The position numbers and the translations under genes are program-made. DNA of 64,000 bases from Takakia lepidozioides (Eukaryota > Plantae > Bryophyta): NCBI GenBank assembly GCA_030704615.1, contig CM060731.1:4650001-4714000 (forward strand). The letters are read 5' to 3'. Positions 1-28,438 of this stretch are shown here, in pieces. A model generated the notes under the pieces. That model saw only the letters and a list, made by a program, of their open reading frames with translations. It did no database searches and was not told where the DNA came from. The first letter of the stretch is position 1, and the number at the start of each line of letters is the position of its first letter.

Positions 1-1041
1 GTGCAAAGATGGTGTAGGTATCGGCTTGTTTTGGCCGTAGCTCTTGAGTATTTAAGGGTAAATTCACTTGGCTTCAGGAGACGGTGCCCCGCGGCGGTGG
101 TGAGTTGGGTGAGAGTGGTGATGTGCCGCTCTTTGAAGTAGGTGAGAATGGGTATTTTTTGTTTAGGATGAGAAATTTCGAACTGAGAAAGAAAGGGGCT
201 TGTGAGCCATGCCCTTTCTAGTATTGACAAGATATTAGGGTAATTCGGTAGGTTTGTATACTAATTTTCATTTGACGTTGTATGAGTAATGTACGTGCGG
301 TAGGAGAGTGAAGGCAGGCTTGTGGGTGTAGTGATGATAGAGAGTAGAGTCCATTGTACTTTAAGGCAAGGAACTTAAGGAGTCCTTGGTAGATTAGGCC
401 TTCCATTAATTGTGTGCCTAAGGTGCGAGCATATGAGATGATTAAGGGGCTTGAGCCAATCCCGTAGCTGTCAGTGGGAAGTTGGGTGAGGGCATTAGGG
501 GTGCTGGTAGGTAGGCCACAGACACGCTTCGTGAGTTGAATAATACTCTTGTCCAGTTTTTTTAATGTGTGGGAGGGAGAAGGGTGCGACATGAAACGAA
601 TATTGGAGTTGGGTTCTTAGTACTGATTGTATGATTGACAGTTTAGGTCGGATGGCAATGGGGGATTTGAGGAGAGCCAAACTTTTGTTGGCTAGTTTGG
701 ATGATGTGGAGTCTTTTTGGACGTGCCAGGTGAGGGAGGGGACCAGTTGGATGCCCAGGTAAGTGTATGGTTCATCTGGCCCCAGGAAGGGGAAGGGTTG
801 GTTCTGGTAATGCACATAAAGTTTGCAGTGGGAGGCGATAGCAGTCTTGGTGAGTCGGCTATGATGTGTTGTTGCGGTAATGGCACATTTGTGGAGACTA
901 AGTTCCATACCGGACCATTGGTTGAAGCGGTATAGTTTGGTAACTTGTCAATTTAGGTGTTGCGGTTTATGAGCGAGGATAGCGAGGTCATCGGCGTATG
1001 CAACAGCGGATATTTCGCTTGAGGAGGTTTCATACTGGTAG
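1..1041 (-). pseudogene. Non-LTR retrotransposon (LINE) reverse transcriptase, 3' part, decayed
   Basis: The minus strand reads YQYETSSSEISAVAYADDLAILAHK (RT catalytic YADD, ~960-1040), then PYTYLGIQL (ORF 495-908) and a post-RT region (ORF 218-592). Stops and frameshifts are present. Interrupted at 1042 by a CACTA element. Confidence 0.9.
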
Positions 1042-1340
1042 CACTACTACGTTTAGGGGGGGTTAGCGACGCCAGGACCCCGGACGTGCTAGACGCGCCG
1101 ACCCCCCTGCGACTGTAGCGTCGCGCAAGCGCCCGGCCCGGACTTGCGACGTCGGGGCATCACAACACCGGCGCTCAAACGACGTTGTGGCATCTTGCGA
1201 TGCCATGCCGTCGCCGGACAACGACGCTACCGCGTGAGCCTAGCGCGTGAGCGCGTGAGCGTACGCTCACACAACAATGACCTGGCATGAGCCTACGCTC
1301 ACGCAGCTGACGTGGCGTGAGCCTGGTCCAGGTCATGCCA
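1042..1340. repeat. Left TIR and GC-rich subterminal repeats of the CACTA-ended element
   Basis: TIR followed by repeated GCGACG/CGTCGC and GCGTGAGC motifs. The 19-mer GCTGACGTGGCGTGAGCCT (~1306) recurs at ~12342. Confidence 0.85.
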
Positions 1341-1824
1341 TGTCACCACTAAGAAGGTGGGCCTATAACTGTGGAGCCTACAACTACTGATTTCACCACA
1401 TGAAGGTGAAACGGATGAAGGGTTTCGGGCTTTCCTGGAGTTCAACCTTCTGTTAACAGGAGCTTCATTTCCTAGAACTGAAATGAACGTTGTGTTAACA
1501 CGAGGTTGTTTTCATGGAACAAAAATCAACATCGTTGTTTTCTTAGAACTAAAATCAACCTTGTGTCGACACAAGGTGGATTTGGAGAACTTCAAGTGAA
1601 CCTCGTGTTAACACGAGGTTGATTTGATCATTTGTCTATCTGAAGGTCGTTTCTTGTGTTTGCTAATGAAAACAGAATGACAAACCAATGCGACAAATGC
1701 GTTGACCCACGCATAGCAAAGATGTTGGACGATATACATTGAGAGACACTGGACTTGAACAGTCATTCCATTACAAGTTGTAGTCAAGGAAAACACAGAT
1801 TTCTTCATGTCAAGTGCATGTTGT

Positions 1825-4800
1825 CTATGGGCTTGTATCCCGCTGTAGAATTGTGTTGACTTTGTTGAAACTCATAGTGGCTTGGTGAATGAAGAAGTCG
1901 CGCTTTGGATCACAAACCATCCTTCTTAAGAAGACGAAGTAAAGGTGTTTGCACGGTATGAACTTCCCTCTCTTTCACAAACTACTTGAAAGCATACCAA
2001 CAAAATCAGGACAGGTACAATTGGGAAAATTGGAAACAATGATGTTGTACATCTTGTCCTACAGCGCAGATGCGGATGAGATCATGGTGAAGACCTGACC
2101 ATACCCTGGATTAGGCACTTCCATTGTTCCCGCAACACGAGCGTGAAGCATTCTCGCGGACTCGATTTTGTCGTAGTGTTCTGCAGTTGGAGAGAATCGT
2201 CGAACCAGCTTCCCATTCCGTCTGGTTGGCCACAAGTGAGTGTCAGGCGGAGGTACCCGTGAACCGCTTGTACTTGAAGCACCTTCACGTGCAATGGAAT
2301 GTCTGGCTAGGGAGAAACCCGCCTCTTCCAGCATTGCGATCTCTTGGTGAGTGAGACATGTGCCCATCTTCACAGGCCACACGGTTGGTGGAGTAGGCTT
2401 CCTCACCACGGAGGGCCTCACTGTCCCACGCACACATCTCCCGCAATCGTCAGCGCAGAACCAGAACTTGTGGTTCTTTGCCTCTCCTTGTCCGTAAGGG
2501 AAAAACAAACCAGTGAATGTAGGAGCTGCAGTGCGTTCTTTCCCTCTGGATATTAATGATGTACATTTTTCATGATTGGTGGCCCTGATCGCCGCGCATT
2601 TCACACGTGATCCAACACTTGTGCATTCTATATGCCAAACCTCGTCCAAGCACATAGACTCCATTACATGCAGCACCACATTCTGGTCTTCAACCATTGC
2701 AGTGACAGTGCTTGATGCAGGGGTCCGGTCTGGGGCTGAATGGCACTCACATGTGGATGTTCTGCAATTCCATCTCTGATCCAAGGGAACACGTGGCGTC
2801 AAGAAGTTGACCCTGTCCGCCCTATGGGAATCTGCATCTGATCCGGGAGGGGTGTCCAATTTCCGTTTGCAAGACCCAAATCTCTCTTCGCCTTCCAGAT
2901 GGGGAACTCTTCCCACGAGAGGGGTGCCCTCTGCACATATGCTCACTGCCCGCGCTATTTTGCTGGGATCCCCCGATCTTCTGGCTGCCCACAACATCAA
3001 CTCGCTCCTGTCCGGGCCTTTGCCACCAAGGCCACCCCTCAAGAATGACCTGTATCTGGTTTGCTGCTGCAGAGCACGGATAAGGTCATCGACCGTGGCC
3101 GCATACAAATCTCTTCCCTTTTTGCCGGATTGCTGCAACCAGGCATTGTGCACTGTCTCCGCTAGATTGCAAGAAGGCTTGTCCGCCATCTCCTCAATGG
3201 ACATATGCTGCAAGGCGAAAAAACACAAAGCCGATATTAGGATGGGACCCTGAAAGATATATCCGAAGCACCCAAAGGAAGGTGAATGCAAACCGCTCAC
3301 CATTGTCATGGCCGCTCCCCACTATCGGTAACGGAAGTGCCAAAATGTGAACCAGTCTTCCAGTACCCTCATGCTGTCCTCTGATGCCGCTCCAGATGAG
3401 TACCACCAGGCACGAATTGTCTGGAACAATGTATTCGCTTCCCCCAGAGTTTTGGCGTCTTTGTACTGTTTGCACAGTTGACGATGCATACTCTGCATAT
3501 CTGGCTTGATGTCTGCCTTTGTGTATTTGTCCAGGGATTGTGTCCAATGGAAAAGACACGTACGTTCTCTTCCAGGCATTGGCACTTTTGGATCTCCCGT
3601 CCCGAACACAATGCGGATAGCGTTGAAGTTAGCTTGAGCATTGTCGGCCATGAAACCAACAAAATTGGGAGATGGGAGACCGTTGGAGGCCATAACACGA
3701 ATGAGAGCTTCCCACATGAGCTGTTGTGAATCTGTATCCTCTGACTGCATGTCACACACTGCAATTGTCATGACACGTTGGTACACAAGGTCGTAAACAT
3801 GACATGCCATTGTGGTCCAGTCTTTAACCCTCTTGACGTGATCGAACATAAGGAAACAGTTGCCAAGATCGCCACCCTTCTGCATACGTTTAACCAGGCT
3901 GACTCCGCTGCCCTCACCTTTTGTGGCCATTTTGAACATGAATACTTTCCTGGTTCCTTGTCCCGGGAAAACGTTGTCTTGGATGTAGTCGTACATGCTC
4001 CTTTTCTTCAAATCCATAATATTGTCCATATAACCTCGGCTCCCAGAGCCCATTCTTAAAGCGTTCACTTGATTTCTAATGTTTGGAGAAGTCAAAGTTG
4101 AGAAATGGTCCATAACAATGTTCAAAGCTGGTCCCTCCAGTTTTCCTCCAACCGAATCTGATGCACACAGAATACGGCTTTCCAGAAAGGACTTGCTCGC
4201 CCCCATGGCAATTGTAGATGTGGTTCCAGTTGGATTGGTATCCAACTCTTGCCTTATCAGACGCGAGACTGTCTCAACGCTCTCCCTGTAATCCCCCTTG
4301 GACATAGGGTGGTTGTGAAAACCGAAATGGACACAGGCTCTAGTCAGGGTTTTGAATCGATGCACCACATAGTACATTCTGGCGCCACACAATGCAAGGC
4401 AGCAAGGTGGTACCCTACAAAACTTGCACACAAAAGTGTATTGTATGGTGGTGTCACCCTAGGCTTGAATGGATTCTCAGTGACACCATCCCATTCGCTT
4501 TGGTTTTGCACACCTGACAGTGCAAAGTGTCTGTATTTCATGTTCTCGCATTTTAGGTACCCTTTACAGACTATTCGCCTGAGTATGAGGTTGTCATGGT
4601 TGTGAATATTGGAGGTTTTTGTGCGGCACCAAGGGTGCCCATCGTGCTTTTTGTCCATTCCTTCCATGAGACTGGAAATGCCCCCCACGCGACCCGGAGG
4701 AGGCAGTTCGAAAACAATATTACCATCAAAAGATTCCGGCAAGAATGCCACCCTCTGAACATTGAAAGTGCTCCAGTCAATCCCCCTCAACTCACTTCTT

Positions 4801-5328
4801 GAATCCTGCCATCCCACCCATGGCTTTCAGTTTAGGAATGACATTGGTGATCTCTTCCACATCTGCTTCCTGATCTGGACATGGCTGATCCACGAGCGGT
4901 ATTTCACAGGCGTCATCGGAGGATGAGTCCGAAAGCTCAACTACAGTGTCAACGGTACTTGACTCCTTCTTAACAACCACGGGTGTTTTCTCTTGGGCCA
5001 CTGATGCTGCCGTGCCAGGAGTAAGGAACGATCCTGCAGACTGTCTCCGAGGAGCACTGAGCACCTTGTATCTACCTGGAGGCACTCTCTATTGTGTGGT
5101 TGGTGCAGTATGCGAAGGTTTCTGGAATGCGTACTCGAGCAGTTTTCCATTGGCATCGTACACTTCCCTCTCAAGGAATAGAGTTCCATTTTCCAACCGA
5201 AACTGCATTGCGAGCACGTGTTCATGCACCACCGCAAAACCGTCAACTTCCACCTCGTAAGAAAATGGCACAGGGTGGTCCTCACTGAAGAAGTCCGCGT
5301 CAAGGGAGCCCATGGCTTGGGAGGCCAT
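1825..5328 (-). pseudogene. MULE-type DDE transposase with N-terminal GCM-like zinc domain and C-terminal SWIM finger (disrupted)
   Basis: Joins ORFs 5328-5089, 5085-4792, 4817-4344, 4431-3322 and 3309-2059, plus readthrough to 1825. GCM-like region: DGHPWCRTKTSN..C.GYLKC..CKFC..C...C..H.G.HNHP. Catalytic D (MFDHVKR), D (FMADNA), CxxH (TCLFHW) and E (NLAETVH). SWIM: CTCPDF...PCKHLY (~1950-2020). Probable GT-AG intron at ~3300-3211. Several in-frame stops and two frameshifts. Confidence 0.85.
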
Positions 5329-6398
5329 CTGTCAATGTTGCTTCAAAGCGCACAGTTCACAGTCCAATGTTGCTTCTGATTGCAGGTTGTACTAGAGCGG
5401 AGTTTTTTGGCTGTATAGAAGACGTCCTTACACACAATTGTAGGTGTCGCTCCCGCCTGCAGGTCTCCTAACGCGGTTCGGCACATCAAAGAAATGTGTC
5501 CCCATGCGAACCAAGTGAATGGTCACAGAGTGCCCAAATGCGGAGTGGATAATGTCAGCCCTAATTAAAGAATCCAACTGTTTTTTCACAGGTGCCCCAC
5601 CAGTGCATTGGACAACGAATTCCGCAAGTTTGACTGACAGAGCCGCCATTTGGCTGTCATGTCAGATAGTCCAGATGAGGTGCCCATTTCCATTCAATGT
5701 TAACGGCACCTGCACCGCTGTACAACTGTACCAACTGCACATTCCTCTGAAACATCCCAAAAGCTATTACCCAATAATGAATTTTTTCGGATGAGAGGTG
5801 GACCCGAACGAATTTTGGTGGATGAGAAACAAATGATTTCCAGAGATATTCATAACGGTTAGATGGACACGTGTTCGCCATGCATGTGGAATGAGCATGT
5901 GGCACATAGGTCATTTCGAGCGATCATCTTGGCGTGGATGGCCTTGCGGTGAACCTCCCGTAGCGCCATTTTTTCCTTCTTCTCCTTATTCTCCTTGCAA
6001 CCCTGGATTCTGCAGAGACGGTGACCCCATCTTGAGGGAGAAGAAAGCGTCGAAGAACACTTTATTTTACATCAAACAAGCAAAGGGCACGCGCTAAGGA
6101 GAGGATGAGGAAGGCGAGACGGGAACTTAGAATGGGAGAAGAAACCTCCGTTGGAGATGAGGACGAAGGGCAAAACCCGATTCTGCAACCACAGTTTGGA
6201 GAGGAAGGCCTTGAGGTGATTCCGGAGGCGACCGAAGAGCAACCTCCAATAGAAGGGGGGGAGGACGAGGAAGTCAGCTGGGCTCGGGAGGAAGCGTTGC
6301 GAGTGGAGAACCAGGTCTTGAGAGAGCAGGGAGGAGAGATGGACGCGGGAACGCTGCCGTCTGCCGCTATTTCGCACCATCGGGACCTGCTTGGAAGC

Positions 6399-6965
6399 AT
6401 GCTGCCTCCAGACCTCATGGGAAAGTTGAATGCCTCAGGAGCATCATCAAGTGCAAAGAAGAAACCGGAGGTGGCTATCAACCCTCTTTTGCCTTTTTTT
6501 TTTTTGGTCTGTTCCATGCTAAACAGAGAGGTCGACATCAACCTTGCATCAACGCAAGGTTGATGTCGACCTCCAAAGTGTATGTTTTGGGCATGAAACG
6601 AGTGCAGATGATGCACTCGAATCAACCTTGCGTTGACGCGAGGTTGATTCGTGTGCCTGTTTTGTTCATTCCCACCTCCCGTATCCGCTTGGCAGCTTGC
6701 TGCCTCCAGAAACCATGGAAAAGATGAATGCTCCCGATGCATCATCAAGTGCCAAGAAGAAACTAGAGGTTGCAATCTCTTTTTCCATTTGGTTTTTTTG
6801 TTTGTTGAACTCCAATCTGAGAGCTCGACATCAACCTTGCGTCAACGCAAGGTTGATGTCGACCTCCAAAGTGTATGTTTATGAAGGTGAAGCGAAGCGG
6901 GTGCAACACTCGAATCAACCTTGCGTTGACGCGAGGCTGATTTGGATGCCTCTCCTGTTCACTCC
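6399..6965 (+). repeat. ~295-bp tandem duplication of an exon end plus intron start
   Basis: GCTGCCTCCAGA..CATGG.AAAG.TGAATGC..GCATCATCAAGTGC.AAGAAGAAAC..GAG|GT occurs at ~6401 and ~6699. Each copy is followed by two palindromes. Confidence 0.85.
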
Positions 6966-7188
6966 CAGCATCCGGAGTCCCGTGCCATGAACTGCAAGGT
7001 AGGGAAAGTTGATAATGTAAAGCCCCTATAAGAACCTTGCGTCAACGCAAAGCATTTAGTGGGTTCACTGGACTGTTCCGGTATGCATTTTAGACTAAGC
7101 TACATCCCCATCAATCAACCTTGTGTCAACGCAAGGTTGATCCATGGGAGCTCAATCTGTCATTCTTAGGGATATTCATTCTCTGCAG

Positions 7189-8282
7189 AGGAAAAGAAAA
7201 AGGAAATCCATGGGGGGAGATGCGGCAGTGGCAGAAGGTGATGGTGAGGAAGACTCATTTGAGGAACACTATGAAGACAAGGCCGAGGAGGTTATGGGTG
7301 AGAGAAAGTGAACTCCTCGAAGGTGGTTCTGTCGATGGAGGTTCCCGGCGGAAACCTGGTTATCCCACTATGCAGGATGATCTCCATGCCCGCGGTTCGA
7401 CCCGCATTGAGGAACGACATCACGAAGTTGAACAACGATTTTGTTCACGGCTATGTCAAGGGATCTATAGTGTTCTATGTATCCACTATGAACACGAAAG
7501 GAGAGGAGTGTCTTGTAACAGAGGACATAGAGCAAAGTTGGGATGCATGCTGGCGGGATGTAAATAGGGAGTTCGAGTTCAAGCTGTCCAAAAAGGCCTC
7601 CACAAAAGCGTTTATGGGAAAGATGTTTTTTGTCTCGGATGGGAACCATAGACTGCTTGCCTGGATGGATTACATTTCAAGCTTGCACTCAGACGAGATC
7701 GAATGGCACTGGAACGTGGTTTCCATGGTACTCGACCACAAAGGATGTGTCACGTAGCTCTTGACAGCCATGCACGACATAAACAGCATTTCAAACATAC
7801 TCCAAACAGACTTTATGTTCATCCTGGCAGCAGTGGAACTGAAAACGATAGCAAACTGGTTTGAAGACGAAAGCAGAGTACTATGCTTCCCACACAGAAG
7901 AGCAGAGGTCTACAACTGGGCTTGAAGACATTATGAGATTCGAGATGAACAATCAAAGGAAGAACCTCATGAGTGTGTTCGACAAACAAATCCGCATAGC
8001 AGATCCAAGTCTTGGCACGGAATTTCTGGAGCAAGTGAAAGCACATTATGACAAGTATGGCTCCAAGCCATAAATGACCCAAGAGAAATTGCATCGCCTT
8101 TCCATTTCAATGGTGGACAATGCAACCAAAATCAGGTGGTTGGAAATCTGGAATTTGGATCCACTTGTGAGAGACACCAACATGTTCCCAACTCCTGAGA
8201 GGGACTCAAAGACACAAGCAATAAAAGTTGTTAGCGACCACACATTCGACCGTGGCTACACAAAGCAACCTTCTGGAGCCAG
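7189..8282 (+). CDS. Exon encoding a ParB/Sulfiredoxin-like N-terminal domain
   Basis: IPLCRMISMPAVRPALRNDITKLNNDF..GY...VFYV...KMFFVSDGNHRLLAWMDY (DGNHR begins at 7638). This matches the ParB/Srx GxxRxxA signature. Confidence 0.75.
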
Positions 8283-8545
8283 GTAAGGCATTCACAAAAC
8301 CCTTTTCAAATGATTGTGCACATTTGTACTCTCTCCCAAATTCTTATGATCTTTCTTGCTGCAGTTGGAAAAACAAGCGGTGGCTGCACTTGGGGAGTCA
8401 ATGGCAGACTACAAAATCCAGATGGTTTTCCCCCGGATCACACTGGAGGCCTATATCAGGAGATGGAAGCTCGCTGTCTGGAACAACTGCTTCTTCAGGG
8501 AGTTTGAGAGAGACAAAGGAATCTCCAGGTCCTACGAATTCAAAA

Positions 8546-8566
8546 CCCTAAACCCTAAACCCTAAA
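8546..8566 (+). repeat. Interstitial plant telomeric repeat (CCCTAAA)3
   Basis: Exactly three units, located inside an exon. Confidence 0.9.
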
Positions 8567-10568
8567 CAGCGAGCAAGCAATGAAACGAGTGTTGCACAAG
8601 TGTGACCTCCAAGAAACAAATCTGGTACTAGAAGTGTATGTTTCTATATTCTTGTGTCGTTTTTTCCATGTAGAATTGCGAATTTGTAGGTTTTGAGGGA
8701 GGTCTGAGGGCTCTGGACGTGCAGCCGAGCAACATTGCGTTCACACAAGCTTGTATCCCGTTGTTTTGGTTTCACTTTCCTGTACCTGGGGTATCCAATG
8801 ATGTCGTTTTCTGTATGTGAAAGGGCAAAAACTGAAAGACAAATCAACCTTGCGTCAACGCAAGGTTGAGGAAGGGTCAGGCTATGTAGGTCTTCCTGTA
8901 TTCTTGGTTACACTGTACCAACAAACAGCCTTGAATTGACGCAGCGTTGTTTGACGGTATGGATTGCTATAAATGTCCCACAGAAATACCCCAATTTCCA
9001 TACAATTGTAGGAAAGTTAAAGTTATCAACCATGGACAGGTGTTTTCAGCAAAGGAATTCAACCTTGCGTCAACGCAAGGTTGAATATCCATACAAACAG
9101 ATCTTCGGATGGTTGTTTTCTAGCATTGTTTTCCATTTCCTCTGTTAATGAAAACAACCTTGCGTTGACACAATGTTGAATTCCGCTTGTCAATCACTGT
9201 CTCTTTCAATGCAACATTATCATATGTGGATCCGCCAATCTACTTTGCGTTAACGTAAGGTTGATTGGGGATTCCATATTGTGCATGCGATGGATTAGGA
9301 TAATGGGTTTTCCCTCTCGTAAGTGCTCGTTGAAAGTACAGTTCTCCACATTTGGTGTTTTCTTTTTCAGCTCGAATCAACATTGTGTCAACGCAAGGTT
9401 GATTCGAGCTGGCAAAAGTTAGTTTCTCCGTGTTACTGACCTGCATTCCAATACCCTTTTCCTGATGTGTAATCTGTGTCCGGTTTAGATCGAATGACTG
9501 TCTGGGTTTTGGATGTGTGTGATTCAGGTACATGTATCATGTCCTCATACCGGGAAAGTGGCTTAGCGATGACCCAGACTTCATCTACTCATGGGCTGAC
9601 CCCTCCAACGACAAGACAATGTACACGGCTGGTATTGCCAGAGACTGGAGCAGGGCGCACTTCAGAGACAGTGGGTGGTACCTCGATCTTCCAAAACAAG
9701 ACACACCATTTGATGAAGTGGTTTTGAGAAACCTTAATGACAACGCTGCGGCACTTGCCCCGCTTGGTGACAAAGACATTCAGGACAGAATCATTCAAGC
9801 ACTGGCTGCAAAAGAGCCTGAGAAATCTGCTACTCCAAAACGGAAGGGGAAGATTGTCGGGGATCCCCGCCCTCAAGGCAAAGGGCCGCGACAATGTACA
9901 TACTTCTTTCATTTTTTGTCCCTTCTAAATGCATGGTAATTCCATCGATTTAATCTTGTCTTTCCCTATGGATCATGTTGTTATTTCTTGTGGACATTAT
10001 GAAGTCTCTTTCATTCTCTCCTCTCTGCCTGGGCCTTAAAAAACCATCGCTTGTCCTTACTAAATGCATGGCAGGGAACTGATGTCAACCAAATATGGAG
10101 GATACATGAAATGGGCTTCTATTTTTCTTTGAGGAATGATATAAGGAAGCAGACTGGTTATACCTCCAAGGAAAGCAGAAGCTACCTGGTAAAGCTCCGC
10201 AGGAATAGGGCCCGTCAGAGGTCGCTGAAAGACACCCTTCTCCAACTAGGAGGGATAGGAGAACAACAAAGTCTACGGAGTAGCCTTTCGAGGCGAGAGA
10301 ACATCCATCCAGGGTTTTGGGCCAGTTCCATCGTAAGGTGGTGAATGAAAGTTTTCTGGCAATGATGGAATCCAGGAAGTCCACATTCAAAGGGGTACCG
10401 TCGAAATCATGGGACATGCTTGTTTCGTTCCTTACTCAGGTAAGCACATATGTCTTAACTGTGGTATGAATGATTTTGTTTTGGCAACTCGTTCTCGCTG
10501 TCATCAAGATTGATTTCATGTTGGATTTGGATTAGGCTAGTGACACTGTGTCTTGTTTTTTGTTACAG

Positions 10569-11564
10569 GTCACAAAAAGGCCAGATTGGGTGAATGGAGT
10601 TCAGCAAGCATACGCGACTGACCTTGTGGTGCTGGACATTCCTAACGGTTTGTCTGTCCCTGATGTGTTGCTTTCCAATGCAACCCCCACTTGGAACAAA
10701 TCGGATTCTCGTTACTGGCAGTGGGCTTTCTCAGTCAGCAACAAATTTCTTTCTGACTCGGGGACTCTTATTCTCATGCAGTTAGAGGACATGTCAGCAC
10801 GGAGAACTCTTTTCAGCTACATGAAAGCTTCCGGGTCTCGTGTCATCAAAACTTGGACATGCATCAACACTCTGCCTCTTACGAAGGGCGAGTTCCCGGG
10901 GCAGAAAGTGAGTTGGTTCCTTTGAATTAAAGTTTTGTGGTTCTTCAGTAAGTGTCAAAAGTAGGTTATGTCTTTTGCCTCATGCTCTCTTCGTGATTAT
11001 TGACAGACTCGGGTGTTCGAAGCTTTGTGCCTGGTGAGGGGGCGGAAGGACACTCTTCCTCCTGGTATTGTTGAGTTCTAGTTGAGAGACCTTGCAACTC
11101 ACATTGACCCCACCTGCGAGCCTGTGGAGGATGATGTAATCCTCAAGTACGTGGACTCGGGTCGAACTACGAAAAGGTCGACTTGTGTCCCTTGGAGAGG
11201 TGCCCGGGAGAAATCCCCAGCTTTCATGCAGACTTTGGTGGAGACATGCAGCCGTCATGGTGGACGAGTGGTTGACTTGTCTATTGGCACAGGTCGGGCC
11301 CTGAACACTGTATTTGAAATATGGGCAGTGGGCTTAGGAAAGTCCTGTTTTAATTTCTCGTTCGTCTTCGATTTGCAGGAGCATCTTTTCATGCGTGCAA
11401 AAGTGCCGGAAGGCACTTCTTCGGCATGGAGGCTGATACGGAGCTCTTTTCAAGCGAGCTTCATCAGCTTGAGTCGGGCACTACTTCTGCCCCATCCACA
11501 GAGGGACTTCTGGAGGAGCCCGAAGCGCCTGACGAGGATCTCGACGTGGACTCTAATTTTGAGT
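10569..11564 (+). CDS. Three exons encoding an N6_N4_Mtase-like (beta-class) DNA methyltransferase domain
   Basis: Motif IV-like TDLVVLDIPNG followed by WNK...FLSDSGTLIL; then GAREKSPAFMQTLVETCSRHGGRVVDLSIGTG|ASFHACKSAGRHFFGMEADTELF. The latter is equivalent to HPTQKP..L...S..GD.VLDPF.GSGTT..A....GR...G.E. Splicing 11292 to 11379 completes motif I in frame. Confidence 0.8.
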
Positions 11565-12299
11565 GTGAGTAAGTTCGGCTCTTGTCGTGCAAAATACGTT
11601 GCATTTCCTTGTGTCATTCTCGTTCGACAGATGGTTGCTTACATTGTCTATTTCTGGATGATAACATCTACCACCATTCCTCTTCTTGCTTTCCAGAGTT
11701 CGGCACCAGTCATCGAATCAGCAGACACCTTTCGGTTTCCAAGGATACTACATGACCCCGAGTCCCCCTAGAGCTTACTGCTTGCCGGTTTACGCGGAAG
11801 CATGCGCACAGGTGTTGTCCCAACAAACAATGTATTCGCCTCTCCATGGGGGTTGTGGAAAAAAAAAACGTCGCGGGGGTGTTCATAGATGATATTGCTG
11901 CAGACTCTGGAAGTGGTTCATCTGAAACCTCTAGTAGTTCTTGAGGTTCATGTACCGAGGCTTAATAAACTGTGTTTTGGTGTTGCTTCCATCCCCAAAC
12001 TGTTTTTCAAGTTCTTCGCGCGTTCCCGTAAGTACAGTTAGGGATTGCCTGGGGTAGGTCTTGAGCCGGCATTGGAAAATGTTTGTGGGTTGGAATGAAT
12101 GAACTACTTTGCAAAAAAAGGCTTTACTGTTAATATTCAATTCTCTAGCGGGCGATCTCCTCATTCCAAAATCATGTCCTCAATCCTAAACCATCCACAA
12201 ACCTACCATTGTTTTCGGCCGGAAAGAATATTAATGTGGGGGCGATGAAGAGGGTTCAAAAAATAAGGACATAGGCGACAACCGATCCGCGGTAATAGT

Positions 12300-13484
12300 G
12301 GGGGGGAAGCACGGAATTAGGGCCTGCACACGTGGATGCTTGCTGACGTGGCGTGAGCCTAGCCAGGCTCACACGCAAGCATTCCCCGTCATCGTAAAGG
12401 GGTCTAACCCCATTTCCCCGCCAATGCGTTGGGGGGGTTGCGACGACCCCAGAATGCTGCGATGTCGGGGAATCGCAGCGGCCGGGCGTTCCTACAACGG
12501 CAGGGAATCGCAATGCCCGAAAAAATAAAATAAAATAAAATATATATATATTCCCCGCCATCGCAAGAGCGCCCAGCCGTCGCAAAAGCGTCGATGGGGC
12601 TGCGTCGCTGCGATTCCCCAACGTCCTGGGGGTGTCGCGGAAAATTGATTCTGGGAGTATATTGTAGAGCATAATGGGCTTGGCATCCTCAGACTACAAC
12701 CATTGTCCAACAATAAGTTGCAATGCAGTTTTGCAAAACTTAGGCCATTGATAGATATTTGTTCTTGACGAACTCTGGAGATAAGTCTCGGTGCAAGTTC
12801 TAGGTGTGAGAGCTCCTGTAGAGTACGTATAATCTGCAACACAATGATAGGATTGAGATAGTGGTAGTCACTATGAGATAGTGGTAATCACTATGAGCTA
12901 ACTCTTGATATGTATATATTTACTTGGACTGCTTTTGTGATACATAGATGTATTGTAGATTTGTTGGTTAGTGTGTAGTATCTTAGAAATGTTATAATGT
13001 GGAGGTCCTAGGTTCAAGTATGCATTACCTAATATATGTAGAACAATGTATGAACTGTCATTGGACAAAACCGGAATAAATGGTCAATTAGTTTTTGAAA
13101 TTCAAATTCAAATTTTCCACCTAAATTCAAATGTACCCCCTAAACTGTGAGGTCTGGGGGTCGAATTTACCCCCTTATGTGGCGTCGCAGAAAAAAAATG
13201 TTATTTATTTTTATTATTTTTATTATTTTTCGTGATGCCCAGACGTCGCAATTCGCGCCGGCGCCGCGGCGGGGCGGGCGGGGGGTCCTGGGGGGTTTGC
13301 GATTCCCCGACGACGCTAATTAGCGATGTTCCGGGAGCGACGTCTCTGCGACTTCCTGACGTCGCAAAATGCCCTTGACGCGCCCCGAGCGTCGTAGAGT
13401 ATTTTCGTCGCTAATTACGGCGGTTGGAGGTCGCTAGGGCATCGCTAAACCCCCCCCCCCCCCCCCCCCCCCAACGTAGTAGTG
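12300..13484. repeat. Right subterminal repeats and TIR of the CACTA-ended element
   Basis: Clusters of TTGCGACG/CGTCGCAA/GCGATTCCCC motifs at ~12430-12640 and ~13180-13450, ending in a poly-C tract and AACGTAGTAGTG. Confidence 0.85.
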
Positions 13485-13487
13485 TAG

Positions 13488-13617
13488 CCAAGTTTACCAC
13501 GGGCTATCCATCTGAGTAGGGGTTCTAGGAAAATAATGAATAAGTATGGGCTTAAGGTGTCTCCTTGGATAGTGCCGCCTAGGATTGGGATGGGTGGAGT
13601 GGAGAAACATATTGGGC
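13488..13617 (-). pseudogene. LINE RT fragment, upstream partner of 1-1041
   Basis: The minus strand reads PIPILGGTIQGDTLSPYLFIIFLEPLLRW (RT QGDxLSP motif) and is contiguous with 1041 across the TSD. Confidence 0.9.
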
Positions 13618-13676
13618 TCACATATATAAGCTATGTCATGCAACTAGATTTGGTTAGTGAGGGCCAACAACCAACA

Positions 13677-13760
13677 TTTTGCCCAATGGTAAAGGCACAA
13701 GCCACCTCACTAGTGGTTGTGGGTTCGAAATTGCATGTGGATGTTTAAAGGTGTCCACCT
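13677..13760 (+). mobile_element. tRNA-derived SINE-like head
   Basis: A-box-like TGCCCAATGGTAAAGGC and B-box-like GGTTCGAAAT, but no complete cloverleaf. Confidence 0.35.
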
Positions 13761-16700
13761 TCCCACCGGAAGGCATTAGCCTTTCGCGGTCAAGTTGACA
13801 CTATAAATTACGCTTGCTTCGACAATGTATTCACATTTTTCTTTTCATAGTGCGGAACTGATTTCTTGAAGGTGGTACGCAACTCTTGGAAACCCATACA
13901 TTATTTGATTATATCTTAATAAACGTTTGAATAAATTTGGTATTACAGTTAATTTATCTATTAAGTACAAAATATACAAAGTCAACTACGATAATCATAG
14001 TTTCAAACCTTAAGATAAAATATATATTGATCTAATACTCACCATCTAGCCATCATCTAATGCTAACTACATGAGTGCGAAAATATATAGCTGCTGCCCA
14101 AATGGAACTGACCCAACCCTCATTGATCCTTTTCCCTTTTGTTCTTTTATCCATGGAAAGAGCAACAACCATCCGAGGAGCATTGTGCTTGTTGCAAGGT
14201 TTTCCTTTTACCTTTTCCCTTTCCTTTTCCTTTTACGTAGAATCTAGACAACACATAAGGTATATTGTGTAGACTACTTGAATAGTGTGCTCCTACATTT
14301 GCTTGATTTACAGATGGAGCAAGGGCAGCTACTGTCTTTCTAAAACAAGTTGGACCGCTACGTGAATTGTGACGTGTGATTGCCATTACAACAAATCAGC
14401 ATGACATATTTACTCGTGGCAAATCTACGACATTTTACTGATAGCTCAAAATCTTGATATCCTTTAAAACAACATTTTGAATTAGAATCGCTTTAATGAT
14501 CCTCCATACTAATTTCTACAATATTAGTAATTTGTAGGTACTTTTGATAAATACAATAATTATTATGGAATGTCATTGCTTTGGGACACATATAGTAAAT
14601 TGTCTAGTTTTTTATGGCATCTATTAGCTATGAAAGGTGATGTTTAGATCTAAAAGACAAGTGCAATGAGCTATTGGAAACACCAAACATATCTAATTTT
14701 TTTGCTGTAACACTCCTGCGTAACCGCGTATACGAGACGCTGAGGATAAGAGTACATCAAAACCGTATGAAACTTTGCCATGAGCAGATATTGGACAAAT
14801 ACATGTTAGATTAATAGCGTCTTGAATGCATGGCAGGGCCCACACACGGTGCGGCCCGCCAAAAGGAGAGAGTCAGCCCTACCCCACCCGCCCCATGGGA
14901 GTTGGAGGGATGGTCTGCACTCTGGAGGGTCTCCTCATGCCCCACCTGCAGACCGGCAGACCCGTGGAGGGGCTCTCCGTAGGTGCATACGTTGTTCAAG
15001 GTCGAAATAATAAAGGAATAAAAGTTCAGAGGTTATGAAAAAAGCGGTAGGTATCCTAGTGGTTAGGTGCACTCCCTATAAGTGTGACAAATTTGGGTTT
15101 GAAGCTGTCATGACAGTATGGTATGTTGAGATAGAGCTTGATCAGTCTGTTTTGAACTTGGAAAGACTCATAAAGTCTCTAAAAACTTCTCAATCTTTTT
15201 TTAACTTCGAAAAACTTCACAAAGTCTCTAGAAAATTCTAAGTCCGGGATAAGGTAGCAGACCCTCTCTGGGTCTGCCCTGATAAGTAGCAGCAGACCCT
15301 AGGGCGTGGACCCGGCCATGACCCGTTGTTTGGATGTGGCGGGGCCCACAAGCCACACGCTTCTGCATTCGAGACGCTATTAATCTAAAATGAGAGGCAT
15401 AGGAAACGAGTTCTTCTCTACTTGTCGCAATCAAATCTCAATCTTTGAAAGCAAAACATGGATGGCTAACTACTATAAGCTAGATATTTTTTTCTTCTCA
15501 ATTGTAGAGGAAAGAACAAATGACTAGTGAGTGTTTTTATAGGTTCTCTCTAGGCACTCAATCCGTGTACACATGAGTTGGCGAATCACATAGTTGATCT
15601 AGAGGTTGTGGTATGAATGAAGGTAGCATCTTGGGGGATGGCAGTTAGGGCAATGTGTGTCTAGGGCAATATATGTCATAGCAGCAGGTGATGTGCTGCC
15701 AATTTTGAGAATAGAGACAGCCTGTAAGCTGTAGATTTGTATCAGTGGTTTCCGTTAATAGATCAAAAATATCATAATTCATAAATGGGCAGTATGTAAG
15801 AGTCTCACTTCTGAGGTGGTATGTGCCCATTACTACTGGGCTAACATGGTTGTTGACATGTATTCATTATATCTCATTGTACACTGGTTGTAGTGTCAAA
15901 GCATGATCCTTATCTAATGCATTTACGTTCTAAACTCAGTGCTATACGTGGTTCCACATATACAACTATTTTTATAAGCCCTATTGAGCCGTAATAGATG
16001 CTTTGGAGTGCATCCTTGCAACTTTCTACTAAAAGCATTACTTGACTGGCAAACAAATATGTTTTCACCATACGTGTCTTAAAACCATACATCTCGCGGT
16101 CATACACTCCTTCACTGCAATCATTACAAGTAAGCTTACAGCTAGAAAACAACCAGTCAACCAACCAACCAACTAGAATGCAATTAAATACTAATGATCA
16201 GCTAGGACCCACCTCCAAAAAGTGAGCTATAGCCAAAAAGGTGAAATGGCTCTTTGTTATGTTAGGTTCGAACATATCCATTTTCTTTCTGTAGTATTTA
16301 ATCATCAGCGCATTTGTATCTAATATTTTGATACTTTTATATTAATAGCCGGAGGCGCAATGTGAGTCCCTGGAGCTCTGCGTTTTGCGGTGAGAGAAGA
16401 ACTCAACAGTCTCTTCGTCTCTCTCATCCGTCCAACAACGTGCATAGAGATGTTTCTGGGAATCGACTCTTCTGCTATCCTATCAAACCTTCATCAATTC
16501 AAGCAACTAATCGAAGAACCCTCCATCTCCTAAGTGGCCTCTTCTGGCGGTTCTGGGAAGTTCATTTTTCCTTCATCCCCAAACTACGATTCTAATCCAT
16601 TCATTATTTCACAGTAGGTCGCAGTCATCAAGCCTTAACTCATATTTTCCCCCCTCCCTGCTGTCGGCTTGAATTTATGGGTATTTACTCATCCTCCTGC

Positions 16701-23551: not shown

Positions 23552-24023
23552 TTATATATTTTTATTAAAAAAAACTGTGTTATTTATTATTATTTGAGAT
23601 AAAATCGGGACCGTCAAAAAATTTGGATTTGTTTTTTTTTTTTTTTCACATAGGCGGTCCAGATTTATTTTATTTTATCTTTTGGATTAAATTCAACTTA
23701 GTTTAAGAATCTGAACTTGAGCAACTTGTAGTTGTACACTCATGTGCGAGCTACACAGGATAGGGATTTTTCAAACGAATTAGCAAATAAACTACACAAG
23801 TATAAGCAATAGTTTGTTGATACTCACTGTTGCAATTGTGTGCGCCAATCAAGATTGAATATTCTGTCCTGCGAGTCACCCCACACTAGAAGGCTTCCGA
23901 ATCTTGCAAATGTCAAATCGTCATGCAGTTAGAAAACCACCAAACAAAAATAAAAAACTCTGCTGCTGCGAGTTGTAGCCTCGCCGAGCAGCGGGGCCGA
24001 GAGAGAGACGGAGAGAAAACAGG

Positions 24024-25934
24024 AGAGAGAGAAGATATACATGTCATGTCAAGACATGGACAAGACCACTAAAGTCATTGTCATTGAAAGACAAAGCAAC
24101 CCTTTACAGGGCATCATCTAACAACCCCTTTTACCAACTCATTTGAACATCTTATAACTTTTCAGGGTATCTGAAAAAACAGGGTGGGAGGGCGGGATTC
24201 CTGGTCATTCATATCCTGAAAGCCCTATAAGTTGACATAAAGCATTCATTTTTTGTTGTTGACATGGGTCAAGCCTTACATAATCTAGTTCTTGAGCCAT
24301 TCATCTTCCTAAAACAACATCCTGTGTAGGCGTGAAACTGATCTGTCAGTGCCAAGACACATGCAAGATTCATAAAGTAGAAGCGGGGCTAAGTTTTTAT
24401 CAAGTATATGTAAGCCTGGATAATCATTCCAGGACTTCAAGATCAAAACTCTGCCATAGTATAAGGTAGGAAGCGCACAACATCTACCAGCAAGCAGTTC
24501 TTGAAAACCAAAATACTGATGGGGTCAGGTCTGAAGGTGCTTCAGTGCCAAGTCATAAGCCAGATTTCTAACAAAACAAAACATAGGGCTGAGTACCCTT
24601 AAGTAGATATGGGCCTGAAGTGGTATTCCAGGGCCTCATAACAAGCTCTGCTAGTTAAAGAAATGAACTCAGAAACCATTGTCCCCTATCATGCAATGAA
24701 ATAGTGGTGATATAAGAGCCTTGAAGAATGTTTGTTATCACAAGGTCTATCTTCTGATCCATCAGAGCCAGGCCATGGTGTTTCATTTCAGAGCTTAGTT
24801 TCCATGCTGCCAGAGCTATAGTCGCAGCCATGTACCTTTGTTAAAAACATCCAGAGCTTTCAACAGAGATTTTGTTTTCTATGAAGTCCCTTGTGTGTCT
24901 TAACTCCAAAATGTATAAAAGTGGTTATCAAGAACCAAAAACAGGGATAAGGAGTAAGAAGGTGATCCTCATTAGAGCAGACTTGAAGCCGATTTGAGGC
25001 AGCAAGATGGCAGATTTGAAACAACAGTTGGTATCAGCAGCTTCAGGCGGTAGCAGCAATCCCTTATGCATGAATCAGACTCTGCAAGCTTCAATAATTC
25101 AAGACAAGTGAAGACCCTCACCTGTGCCCGTCCCAAAAACCACCACATAGAGATGTGTGTTAGTGAGGATGCATCAGGTGAGTGGCAGGTTTTCACAGTT
25201 GCTATCCATGTCAGTGTTGAATTCCAAAGCATGTACAAATCGTAATCCAAGCAAGGGTACACTCAAAAGAAACCTTGAGCGTTTGCGGTATGCCCTGCGC
25301 CATGGCGTCCAGTAGATGTCTCCAGCAGAACGCAATCAAAGTAGATAGAGATCAGCTCATACAGAAAGAGAGCAACATGTAATCTGTGGCTAAGTAGGGG
25401 TGGAGTACTTCCCAACGAGGAGTAAGAGCGCCGCTGCGAATTTAACAGAATCATAAATTTCTGAGCAGAGCGATCACTGCAATGTCGACTGCCAGAGAAG
25501 AATCTGTCTATCTGCCATTGCGCATCCCAAAAGCCAGCCATCACGAGTACCATGTAGCCGCAAGGGAGCAGGTTTACACGGCGCATCATCAAGGATCATA
25601 GAAGCACGAGTTCAGTGCTGTGAAATATGTCGGCCCGTTTAGGGCATATCTTCCCGATTTTTCATCCAGGGTGGATGAAAAATCACATTTTTAAGAGATG
25701 CACTTTGTTAATGGATGATATCCCATAAAAAGGTATCTTAGGGTTACGGTATAGGCTTAGGTTTAGTAACTGCCATCATTAATGATGGTACAGATTACTA
25801 CCTCTTGGATTTTTAGAATAGGTCACCAGTATTCATGTATTTCATCCAGTTTAGATGAAAGAAGCAAATAGTAAATATCAGGGCCAAATGAAATCCAAAA
25901 AGTTATAGAGGGAGAGGGAGAGAGGGAGAGAGAG
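24024..25934. repeat. Long direct repeat copy 1 (3' pseudo-LTR)
   Basis: Matches 30166-32076; the duplicated ORF translations are identical. Confidence 0.95.
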
Positions 25935-26198: not shown

Positions 26199-28421
26199 TT
26201 AGCTCTGGATAGGTTTTTGGAAAATACCTTTCAGTTTCTCAATAAGCTCATGTACAGGGAAGAACAAGCCAGGGAATGAGCCTTGTTCAAGGAACCTTGT
26301 CAAGATACGAGCAAGTTTCCTGGTCTTAAAACCATTCCTCCCAAGAGTGTTAATCAGAATGCTGCATTCCTTCCAAGCCAAAACAGCATTGCTGGAAATG
26401 TATAGAATAGGCACAGCTTGTGAAATCACAATGTTGTAGGATTGATTCACAGGCCTATTGGATAAGAACTGGATATATTGAGTGTAAGAGAAAGGAAGTA
26501 GTCTTCTCTTGTCATATTTCTGGAAATAGAACTCACCTGTGTCACTGTTTGAGACTGTAATCTGGATATTCATGAAACAAGCTTCCAACCCCACGTATTG
26601 GGAATCGGTTTTGGTACGTAGTAGCTCAGGTTTGATCTCCACTACATTGAGTGGGTAGATCCACCAAGGGTTGTTGCTGCTTCTGTCTGCCTTTGGGTCC
26701 AGGAACAGCATTGCATCACCCACATTCAGCCAGCATATATCATCAATGTATCTGAAGGCAGATTTAAACAAAGGCATGAGCTGGAATTGTCCCAAAGCTG
26801 CAAGCCTTAAGATGAATTTGATCTCGTAAGAAAGGAAGTACATGTTGCACCATAATGGTGAGCATGAAAAACCCATAGGTATTCCAGAAATCTGCTGCCA
26901 CACACGGTCCCCTAAGGCAACAAAACAGTGTGACATAAGCCATTTGTGGAGCATAAGTAACTTGGCTTCAGAAAGCTCAATCCAAGTACCTGATTTCGGG
27001 GAGGACGTGCCCCACCTACTTTTCCGGAAAGTACCGTTTTTGGCTGGAATCCATAGAGTATGACGTGCCCGGGGGTGAGACATATGGTGTTGCTGGAATG
27101 CAATCTTCACCACGTATTCAATGGCGTCCCCTAGGTTATCCTGACCTGTCAAAGGTATGTTCTCATAGCATTGTGTAATGTCAGCCACAAAGATGTTATG
27201 GACTTTTGCAGGCAGGTTTAGTGTAAAGTCAGTGATGGAATCAATAATCCAATACATAGCAGTAGATACTTTGAAAAATTGCTCATAAGTATCCAGCCTT
27301 GTTTTGGTCCATTCTTTTACCAATGGTAGAAGATCCATGGTAGCTCTTGTAAGGAGGCTAGCTAGTTCACTGAAAACACATTTGTGGGCATTGGTAATCC
27401 ATCTGTATTTTTTCTTATGTAGCTTGTAGATTCCCATAATGTAAGGTAGTCTACAGGAGGGAACAGGTATCTCCGGAATCAAACTCTGTATTTCCACGGA
27501 AATGTTTCCTAGAACAAGGTCAGGTGGCAGCCATACCTCATCTTGCTTGCATGGTGTAAAGTCTTTACCCATCAATCTGTGGAATGCTTGGATTCTTACG
27601 TGCTTCACACACATAAAACATACATTGTTGTTAGCCTTGTCAAGACCAGAGAAATACAGGTGATTGAGAAGCCATGAAAGTTCGTCTTTTGCCTCTTTTA
27701 CAGTAAGAGGATTGCGCTCATGGTGAGTGAAGTCATACCTTCTTCTGCCGGCTTTTTGTTTCAGTCTATCCCAGCATGTGTTTTTTACCCATTGGTTGCA
27801 GGTTGCAGCCCAAGATTCACATGGGTCTATATGCAAAATTTCACAGGTTCTGTGGAAAGCCAAAGACACTTGTTCAACAACGTCTTTTAGTAAAGTACGT
27901 TTGAGAGGGATGTGATTCATACCTAGGCTGAATAATTCTTTCAGCTTTGCGTGTTTAATAATGTTCAGGTCCATGGTACGTACGTGTTGCGTAGGTGTAG
28001 AACCAGACAGATGGAATTCTGATTTTGTATCCACATCCCGAAAATCATGAAACCTCTTGGCACTGTCACATAGACAATCTGGTGAGTGAATCAAGTCTTG
28101 CATAAAGCAAAAATCACGGAAAACAACAGCAGGCTGATAGTATTCAGAACTGCTTTGTTTATGATATGTCCATCCAAAAACTATCTCATCGATGAGAATA
28201 GCTAAGTCATTTTGCCCAAATTCCAGAAAGGCTTCTTTTATCAGGTTCTTAGGGTGTATCCACTCCATACCACGGTTTGGGTATAACATATGAATGAATC
28301 CCAAAGGAGCAGGTTTTGCTGCCTGTTTTATGAATTTCCTGCCATGGGCATGAGTTTCAATTTGTTTGCAACCATCCTCAAAGACATATAACGCATCTGC
28401 ACATACAGAGTAGAGGAACAT
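26199..28421 (-). CDS. Penelope-like (PLE) reverse transcriptase, 740 aa, intact
   Basis: PLE-type motifs: DKANNN, LPYIMGIYKLHK..YRWI, ADITQCYENIP, QISGIPMGFSCSP, FRYIDDI and YDKR. The N-terminal CxC...HVRTMDLNII..KL..L...G linker resembles Naiad/Chlamys. No GIY-YIG is visible. Confidence 0.85.
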   Translation of the reverse strand: MFLYSVCADALYVFEDGCKQIETHAHGRKFIKQAAKPAPLGFIHMLYPNRGMEWIHPKNLIKEAFLEFGQNDLAILIDEIVFGWTYHKQSSSEYYQPAVVFRDFCFMQDLIHSPDCLCDSAKRFHDFRDVDTKSEFHLSGSTPTQHVRTMDLNIIKHAKLKELFSLGMNHIPLKRTLLKDVVEQVSLAFHRTCEILHIDPCESWAATCNQWVKNTCWDRLKQKAGRRRYDFTHHERNPLTVKEAKDELSWLLNHLYFSGLDKANNNVCFMCVKHVRIQAFHRLMGKDFTPCKQDEVWLPPDLVLGNISVEIQSLIPEIPVPSCRLPYIMGIYKLHKKKYRWITNAHKCVFSELASLLTRATMDLLPLVKEWTKTRLDTYEQFFKVSTAMYWIIDSITDFTLNLPAKVHNIFVADITQCYENIPLTGQDNLGDAIEYVVKIAFQQHHMSHPRARHTLWIPAKNGTFRKSRWGTSSPKSGTWIELSEAKLLMLHKWLMSHCFVALGDRVWQQISGIPMGFSCSPLWCNMYFLSYEIKFILRLAALGQFQLMPLFKSAFRYIDDICWLNVGDAMLFLDPKADRSSNNPWWIYPLNVVEIKPELLRTKTDSQYVGLEACFMNIQITVSNSDTGEFYFQKYDKRRLLPFSYTQYIQFLSNRPVNQSYNIVISQAVPILYISSNAVLAWKECSILINTLGRNGFKTRKLARILTRFLEQGSFPGLFFPVHELIEKLKGIFQKPIQS

Positions 28422-28438
28422 ACCAAAAAATGAGATTT

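Follow-up and report, generated by a model that had tools for sequence, protein, structure and literature searches.

A Takakia lepidozioides transposon with a Mutator/IS256-like transposase, CACTA-like ends, palindrome arrays and a putative ParB- and methyltransferase-like accessory gene

Our analysis of a 64-kb stretch of the Takakia lepidozioides genome (hereafter the window) reveals a 12.4-kb DNA transposon, located at positions 1042-13484 and flanked by a TAG duplicated at the target, in which a minus-strand transposase gene (2059-5085) and a plus-strand multi-exon cargo gene (~7144-11572) stand head-to-head and are accompanied by arrays of a 26-bp palindrome. This element represents a DNA-transposon family of seed-free land plants, and it is fairly probable that the ParB- and methyltransferase-like accessory protein encoded by its cargo gene acts on the element's own palindromes, DNA or chromatin. 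The predicted product would consist of a ParB/Srx nucleotide-binding N-terminal domain, a conserved middle region and a beta-class PF01555-like domain. In line with a proposal made for algae, it would recognise the palindromes of its own element and would act on the element's DNA or chromatin, with control of the divergent promoter, assembly of the transposition complex or counter-silencing as possible roles. The co-conservation of the two genes, the arrays found between them, a palindrome core shared between distant relatives and the purifying selection exerted on the cargo gene all fit a protein acting on its own palindromes. The observation on which an initial annotation of the window was built, i.e. 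a bounded element with two divergent genes and about 15 palindromes, is confirmed, while its interpretation is partly supported.

Relatives identified elsewhere support the view that transposase, cargo gene and palindromes form one element and not a nested insertion. In two Logan contigs (L001 and L002), the transposase gene, the palindromes and the cargo gene follow one another as they do in the window from position 1439 onwards, the collinearity of L001 covering 1439-10603. Since L001 is collinear over both genes and keeps palindrome clusters A and C (Table 1), genes and palindromes co-occur in a second copy, and the separately nested cargo envisaged as an objection in the initial annotation was not found. 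At a larger distance, a metagenome scaffold (L003) contains every cargo exon in the same order with 37-56% identity. In the ferns Adiantum nelumboides (L004) and A. capillus-veneris (L005), homologues of the transposase (30-40%) and of ParB (37-43%) stand head-to-head, with methyltransferase exons after the latter, and palindrome arrays occupy the intergenic region. A search for CACTA termini in these fern loci returned chance-level pairs only. In L004, an inverted repeat of ~800 bp (68% identity; 16-813 and 23643-24444) brackets the transposase/ParB unit and reaches within 16 bp of the start of the locus, so that its outer boundary was not located. It could correspond to the long Mutator-type terminal inverted repeats (TIRs) of a ~24-kb element or to two copies of another repeat.

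The palindromes themselves are confined to the transposon. With the 26-mer TCAACCTTGCGTCAACGCAAGGTTGA as query and up to 7 mismatches allowed, 16 sites are present in the window (10 of them with 3 mismatches or fewer), against ~0 in shuffled sequence; all lie within the element and fall into three clusters. The regular spacing of the pairs in cluster B is partly due to a tandem duplication of 293 bp. The intergenic region of A. nelumboides contains at least seven palindromes of the form GAGCCCTGCGTYRACGCAGGGCTC, whose 12-bp core TGCGTYRACGCA is identical to that of the window; at the corresponding intergenic place in A. capillus-veneris, another palindrome is present twice. This conservation of gene order, together with palindromes that partly co-vary, is the best evidence for genes and palindromes working together; it does not indicate which protein would bind them.

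The boundaries of the element could be placed with precision, as claimed from the start. The 12-mer CACTACTACGTT has two exact occurrences in the window (0.09 expected), at 1042-1053 (+) and 13473-13484 (-), and is followed at either end by a stretch of G and then TTAGCGAYGCC; the TIRs measure 12 bp as a perfect repeat and ~35 bp as an imperfect one. In silico removal of 1042-13487 fuses the flanks into a stop-free reverse-transcriptase frame of a long interspersed nuclear element (LINE; ...GDTLSPYLF...LRWIARGKL/GYQY...AYADDLAIL, with the slash at the junction), and this restoration implies that the boundaries and the 3-bp duplication are exact. The host LINE is on the minus strand (495-1041 and 13488-14100); since the empty site lies within an open frame, the insertion is younger than a still-coding LINE copy. 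The TIRs differ in their expandable homopolymers, with 25 bp of C on the right (13452-13476) versus 7 bp of G on the left (1056-1062). GCGACG/CGTCGC motifs are found at both ends and GCGTGAGC at 1232-1322 and at 12351. Moreover, L003, a relative with ~50% protein identity, has a GTGAGC/GCTCAC array similar to that of the left end on the 3' side of its cargo gene (5122-5185). These motifs are the more likely candidates for terminal transposase sites, distinct from the 26-bp palindromes. L001 and L002, two independent contigs, stop at the same point (window ~1439-1442), ~400 bp inside the left terminus. Their coincident ends suggest that the terminal 400 bp are common to many more copies, for example non-autonomous derivatives, than the internal part. 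No further piece of the transposon was found elsewhere in the window, and an Rfam scan of positions 1-16000 gave no match.

Although complete, the copy present in the window is decayed. Compared with L001, which is 86-90% identical, its cargo gene has four lesions that were overlooked in the initial annotation: a 1-bp deletion near 7300, TAG in place of CAG at 7755-7757, the loss, beyond 7785, of a splice donor together with the next exon, and an insertion at 8543-8567. The cargo gene of this copy is dead, and L001 carries a stop of its own. When L001 and the window copy are compared, the ratio of nonsynonymous to synonymous substitution rates (dN/dS) amounts to 0.18 in the ParB exon, 0.07-0.10 in the middle exons and 0.28 in the core of the transposase; such low values imply that the cargo gene was under purifying selection while the copy lineages diverged. 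The fourth lesion is a repeat of the plant telomere type. Like the sequence AAACCCTAAACCCT downstream of the L003 cargo gene (4944-4963), it is telobox-like; such motifs are known as regulatory sites in plants.

The domain content of the cargo protein was approached exon by exon. The exon at 7302-7754 has no Pfam match even at E<=10, PF02195 (ParBc) included, and a profile search of Protein Data Bank (PDB) sequences with its alignment returned nothing relevant; its 495 relatives among 1.84 billion representative proteins are mostly fragments. An AlphaFold2 model based on an alignment of 146 relatives displays a mean pLDDT (predicted local distance difference test) of 93.9. The best 46 rows of a Foldseek search with this model all belong to ParB/Srx, with weak E-values (0.03 upward), and VIA-align superimposes it on Caulobacter ParB over 84 residues with a Z of 7.2 and a root-mean-square deviation of 2.1 Å. 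In an exhaustive VIA comparison with 48,161 representative chains, 13 reached Z>=2 and the top 12 were all from the ParB/Srx superfamily, including KorB (6.4), SerK (6.4), sulfiredoxin (6.3) and PadC (6.2), as well as Atu1540, SbnI, pNOB8 ParB-N, Spo0J, Osa, SspE and BrxU. The GxxR phosphate-binding box corresponds to DGNHR. Among the nine closest members compared, its D, G, N and H never vary and its R is present in eight; across 39 members, R occurs in at least 90%. The ParB/Srx N-terminal domain is thereby established at the level of a modelled fold. By language-model features, the named ESM-Atlas cluster nearest to this exon carries DUF3723 (PF12520) of ascomycete fungi (score 0.93, few shared features); mobile elements of fungi might thus contain ParB-like domains too.

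At the 3' side of the gene, three exons (the third coding over 11379-11569, followed by TAA) have GT-AG borders and compatible phases. Their family alignments were compared by hhalign with a PF01555 reference profile made of Escherichia coli YhdJ relatives and eight phage methylases, and matched it collinearly at positions 33-88, 198-226 and 225-259 (P 7.5e-5, 1.1e-5 and 4.8e-4); as controls, the queries in reversed form and four further cargo exons gave P values of 0.13-0.74. Against a shallow profile built from YhdJ only, the values were merely suggestive (0.016-0.16). Exons 2 and 3 match phrog_3008 ('DNA methyltransferase') at abutting positions with weak E-values (0.06 and 0.04), and the language-model neighbours of this part are methyltransferases, again with a weak score (0.87). 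The circularly permuted order of beta-class motifs, IV ... X-I-II-III, is kept across exons 1, 2 and 3 in turn. By homology, the 3' exons are thus predicted to adopt a PF01555-like fold, i.e. that of a beta-class N6/N4 amino-methyltransferase. The GxG loop binding S-adenosylmethionine (SAM; VVDLSIGTG, spanning the junction of exons 2 and 3) and the acidic residue after strand 2 (FFGMEAD) are both kept in the sequence. In contrast, the catalytic (D/N/S)PP(Y/F/W) loop is not, as the window copy reads DIPNG instead of DPPY and has lost the aromatic residue. The ParB fold and the PF01555 profile match proposed initially are therefore recovered, the latter by hhalign and not by Pfam hidden Markov models, whereas the catalytic motif is not intact. 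Neither a word-indexed homologue search with exon 1 nor a PDB profile search with the three exons nor tblastn of exon 2 against phages yielded a relevant match, and searches with these exons found no close prokaryotic or phage relative of the cargo protein. Two long phage 'site-specific DNA-methyltransferases' considered as ParB fusions were rejected, since they contain PF01555 alone.

Several points weigh against an accessory protein acting on its own element, and are best considered together. Scans of every exon and open reading frame (ORF) with Pfam, NCBIfam and PHROGs detected no significant family apart from the weak phrog_3008 matches; for the exons, Pfam, NCBIfam and PDB sequence searches gave no match even at E<=10. 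The domain calls consequently depend on a single fold model and on short exons aligned profile to profile. The splice model that joins the ParB and methyltransferase-like exons is itself predicted, and the Mutator-like protein would be no more than the putative mover of a CACTA-ended element with a 3-bp duplication. Library scans of the middle exons found no helix-turn-helix or other DNA-binding domain beside the ParB N-domain, so that binding of the palindromes by the cargo protein is purely inferred and a 'parS-like loading' is an analogy only. Finally, motif IV reads DIPNG, DLPEG, DVPFG, DFPIG and HLPTN in five family sequences, with the proline as sole invariant residue. This lack of conservation weakens an enzymatic role, and a relic domain devoid of function would fit too. 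The degenerate catalytic loop and the lack of a recognised DNA-binding domain weaken the proposed mechanism as a whole.

An alternative that deserves serious consideration, unlikely as we find it, is that the palindromes serve the transposase (through an N-terminal zinc finger), a bidirectional promoter or small-RNA hairpins, and that the ParB-methyltransferase-like protein acts elsewhere, on host chromatin or RNA or as an NTPase or nuclease in transposition. The location of one cluster (1484-1622) downstream of the transposase gene and close to the left end, and that of the main cluster in the divergent promoter region, would suit this possibility, as would the library scans of the cargo exons just mentioned and the occurrence of ParB/Srx domains in kinases, nucleases and sulfiredoxins. 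However, the right end is deprived of palindromes and has GCGACG and GTGAGC motifs instead, which makes the palindromes unlikely terminal transposase sites. In addition, inverted-repeat arrays accompany ParB-type genes in unrelated red-algal transposon superfamilies (bioRxiv 10.1101/2025.02.11.637652).

It is also doubtful that the protein is an active amino-methyltransferase, loaded at the palindromes in a ParB-like manner and leaving an N6-methyladenine or N4-methylcytosine (6mA/4mC) self-mark, for instance in the GTYRAC centre. Such a writer would explain why the beta-class order and the SAM motifs IGTG and GMEAD are kept and why a GTYRAC-type palindrome centre is conserved between Takakia and a fern. 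Besides, a fern relative has an aromatic residue in motif IV (DVPFG) and a genuine phage PF01555 enzyme reads DIPYG. Nevertheless, the loop is DIPNG in the Takakia lineage and DLPEG in a relative diverged by 50%, and its variation across the five sequences argues against a conserved 6mA/4mC activity. As the SAM motifs are kept while the catalytic loop drifts across the family, the domain in the Takakia lineage is more likely to function as a cofactor- or DNA-binding module, to judge from its motifs, than as an active 6mA/4mC writer.

The second unusual trait of the element concerns its transposase. Its gene changes frame near 4430, and near 3310 there is either an intron or a read-through. For the ORF at 3322-4431, 191 homologues are known, all of them devoid of Pfam domains, and their consensus is MFDH ... 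CDMQSED..W ... FMADSAQANWNAVR ... CLFHW. The model has a pLDDT of 78, with low confidence at the N-terminus. Almost all ESM-Atlas neighbours of the model are Mutator-like element (MULE), ZSWIM1-3 RNaseH-like or FAR1 clusters (60-100% PF10551, TM 0.42-0.56), and among solved structures ISCth4 of the IS256 family ranks first (probability 1.00, E 4e-3), with P element and Hermes behind it. The DDE part of the 'GCM-like/DDE/SWIM' transposase described initially is thus retained as a Mutator/IS256 fold; the GCM-like and SWIM fingers stay putative, given no Pfam match and low model confidence at the N-terminus. Pfam scans of the window ORFs and of 60 homologues matched neither PF10551 (MULE) nor the TnpD-type PF02992. 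MULEs and IS256 share with this protein a common core fold and the layout D ... SED..W ... D(x)nCxxH ... NxxE. They differ at the level of the element, since MULEs have duplications of 8-11 bp and long TIRs, whereas the Takakia element has 3 bp (TAG), a short CACTA-like TIR and no PF10551 match. Conversely, CACTA/En-Spm elements resemble it in their CACTAC... termini, 3-bp duplication, short subterminal repeats and two genes, but they encode a TnpD-type transposase and a TnpA-like gene, neither of which is present here. As far as the sequence can tell, the element is Mutator-like by its transposase and CACTA-like by its ends and duplication.

This mismatch could point to a composite, in which a CACTA shell is moved in trans by a TnpD-type transposase and the Mutator-like and ParB genes are passengers or a nested older element; the fern loci, whose termini are not definable, do not contradict it. 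We regard this scenario as quite improbable because no internal long Mutator-type TIRs or 8-11-bp duplication surround the gene pair, the pair and its intergenic palindromes are conserved from Takakia to ferns, and the subterminal GTGAGC motif recurs beside the L003 cargo gene. As for a Pack-type origin, with captured pieces of host or bacterial genes that have no function for the element, the broken cargo gene of the window copy and the mostly fragmentary database relatives might evoke it, yet it is very improbable and already largely refuted by conservation, with all exons 37-56% conserved in L003 and recognisable in ferns and dN/dS values of 0.07-0.18 between the two copies.

Returning to the accessory protein acting on its own element, a bolder version is possible, if rather unlikely: at least Takakia and ferns would share an old land-plant lineage in which a Mutator/IS256 transposase operates on CACTA ends with 3-bp duplications and in which the ParB-methyltransferase-like protein recognises a conserved palindrome core, TGCGTYRACGCA, of its own element. 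If true, this would be a private self-recognition or anti-silencing system, either homologous or convergent to the one proposed in algae. The features on which these considerations are based are listed in Table 1.

Table 1. Features of the Takakia transposon, in window coordinates
Feature	Position	Strand	Basis or remark
Left TAG target-site duplication	1039-1041		LINE reverse-transcriptase frame restored on excision
Left TIR: 12 bp perfect CACTACTACGTT, G run, TTAGCGAYGCC common to right end	1042-1075	+	12-mer present twice in the window
Left subterminal region: GCGACG/CGTCGC motifs; five GCGTGAGC motifs at 1232-1322	1076-1330		
Palindrome cluster A: 3 degenerate sites, downstream of transposase gene	1484-1622		Kept in copy L001
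Mutator/IS256-like DDE transposase gene	2059-5085	-	Fold of model and motif layout
Transposase ORF with NLAETVHN 'E' motif and C-terminal part	2059-3309	-	
Transposase ORF with zinc-finger region and catalytic core (D, D, CxxH)	3322-4431	-	
Transposase N-terminal ORFs	4792-5085 and 4344-4817	-	
293-bp unit in tandem duplicate, two palindromes per copy	6389-6967		
Palindrome cluster B: 6 sites (three pairs at 84-bp spacing) in the region separating the divergent genes	6538-7140		Arrays of ferns L004/L005 at same position
Cargo N-terminal coding part, with a basic (RKRKRK) and an acidic stretch; frame shifted versus L001 by a 1-bp deletion near 7300	7144-7301	+	
ParB/Srx-fold exon (IPLCRM...VRP...DGNHRLLAW...AMHDIN); in-frame TAG at 7755-7757, CAG in L001	7302-7784	+	
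Scar of ~300-bp deletion: splice donor and next exon lost (kept in L001:2645-2887:- and L003 1087-1420)	7785-7851	+	
Middle exons without recognisable domain, conserved in L001 and L003: 7852-8070, 8074-8283 and 8350-8562	7852-8562	+	dN/dS 0.07-0.10
(AAACCCT)3.6 telomere-like insertion interrupting cargo exon; not in L001 or L003	8543-8567	+	
Palindrome cluster C: 7 sites, long intron of cargo gene	8729-9402		Kept in L001
Further middle exons 9523-9936 and ~10218-10341; conserved in L001, L003 and L006	9523-10341	+	
Methyltransferase-like exon 1: strand 4, motif IV (DLVVLDIPNG), PxW, LSDSGTLILM	10569-10907	+	hhalign P 7.5e-5
Methyltransferase-like exon 2: motifs X and I (EKSPAFMQTLVETC...VVDLSIGTG)	11082-11292	+	hhalign P 1.1e-5; phrog_3008
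Methyltransferase-like exon 3: end of motif I, II, III (ASFHACKSAGRHFFGMEAD), acidic tail, TAA stop	11379-11572	+	hhalign P 4.8e-4; phrog_3008
GCGTGAGC...GCTCAC palindrome, subterminal motif type	12351-12374		
Right subterminal region, many GCGACG/CGTCGC motifs	13150-13440		
Right TIR, with 25-bp C run	13441-13484	-	
Right TAG duplication	13485-13487		LINE reverse-transcriptase frame restored on excision

Outside the transposon, two long ORFs of 740 and 492 amino acids are located on the minus strand at 26199-29917, between direct repeats at 25659-25790 and 31801-31932.

Two features are worth following, namely the palindrome core shared with a fern and the association of a Mutator-type transposase with CACTA-type ends. 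The first, combined with the conserved gene order, provides a defined candidate binding site common to Takakia and a fern, and genomes suited to 6mA/4mC calling, chromatin immunoprecipitation and transposition assays become available. The second bears on how DNA-transposon superfamilies are defined and automatically annotated. The claim of a new system made in the initial annotation was overstated given the algal counterparts published in 2025, although our literature search found no description of such a ParB-methyltransferase transposon in land plants. The element is a land-plant example of the kind published for algae in that year, and the idea of self-modification is not new.

To our knowledge, experimental proof that a transposon protein alters the epigenetic state of its own element exists for VANDAL/VANC only. 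VANDALs resemble the model favoured here in being Mutator-type elements whose accessory protein recognises element-specific motifs and changes the epigenetic state of the element; VANC is unrelated to the Takakia cargo in sequence and fold, which limits the comparison to a functional analogy. Genes that combine ParB with a DNA modifier, as proposed in algae in 2025, would form a second class of this type, and their presence in seed-free land plants widens its range. The likely ultimate source of the domains is found in phage and plasmid ParB-Tls loci, which associate a ParB-type domain with a beta-class amino-methyltransferase and to which eukaryotic methylases have been traced (Iyer et al. 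2015, PMC4738411). Unlike the Takakia gene, these prokaryotic loci contain no introns, keep the DPPY loop intact and serve to package or modify phage DNA.

Among eukaryotic elements, the Plavaka-associated genes (PAGs) of red algae are cargo found in Plavaka, Mutator, Zisupton and other elements and accompanied by inverted repeats arrayed in tandem, PAG2 combining PF01555 with a SET domain and PAG3 a ParB-like domain with a 2-oxoglutarate (2OG) oxygenase; the self-modification hypothesis has been published for Bostrychia in this work too (Petroll et al. 2025, bioRxiv 10.1101/2025.02.11.637652). Similarly to the Takakia cargo, their ParB-like N-terminus is seen by remote homology only (best HHpred match 7BNR), PF01555 is represented and inverted-repeat arrays lie beside the ParB gene. 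They differ in that the functions are distributed over two genes, ParB with 2OG oxygenase and methylase with SET, next to an EnSpm/Plavaka transposase, versus a single gene in Takakia. The brown alga Ectocarpus offers a further parallel with Sola1-1_Ec32, which encodes, opposite to its transposase, a 1104-amino-acid protein with ParB-like and N4C/N6A methyltransferase domains, proposed by its authors to bind and modify its own element (Dinatale et al. 2025, PMC12477816). As in Takakia, ParB-like and N4C/N6A-type domains are united in one protein on the strand opposite the transposase. This element belongs to the Sola1 superfamily and its DNA methyltransferase domain is reported as such, in contrast to the Takakia domain with its degenerate catalytic loop and no Pfam match. 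Compared by published descriptions, the Takakia element displays what characterises the algal accessory genes: ParB-like and methylase domains beside a transposase, with inverted-repeat arrays in their immediate vicinity.

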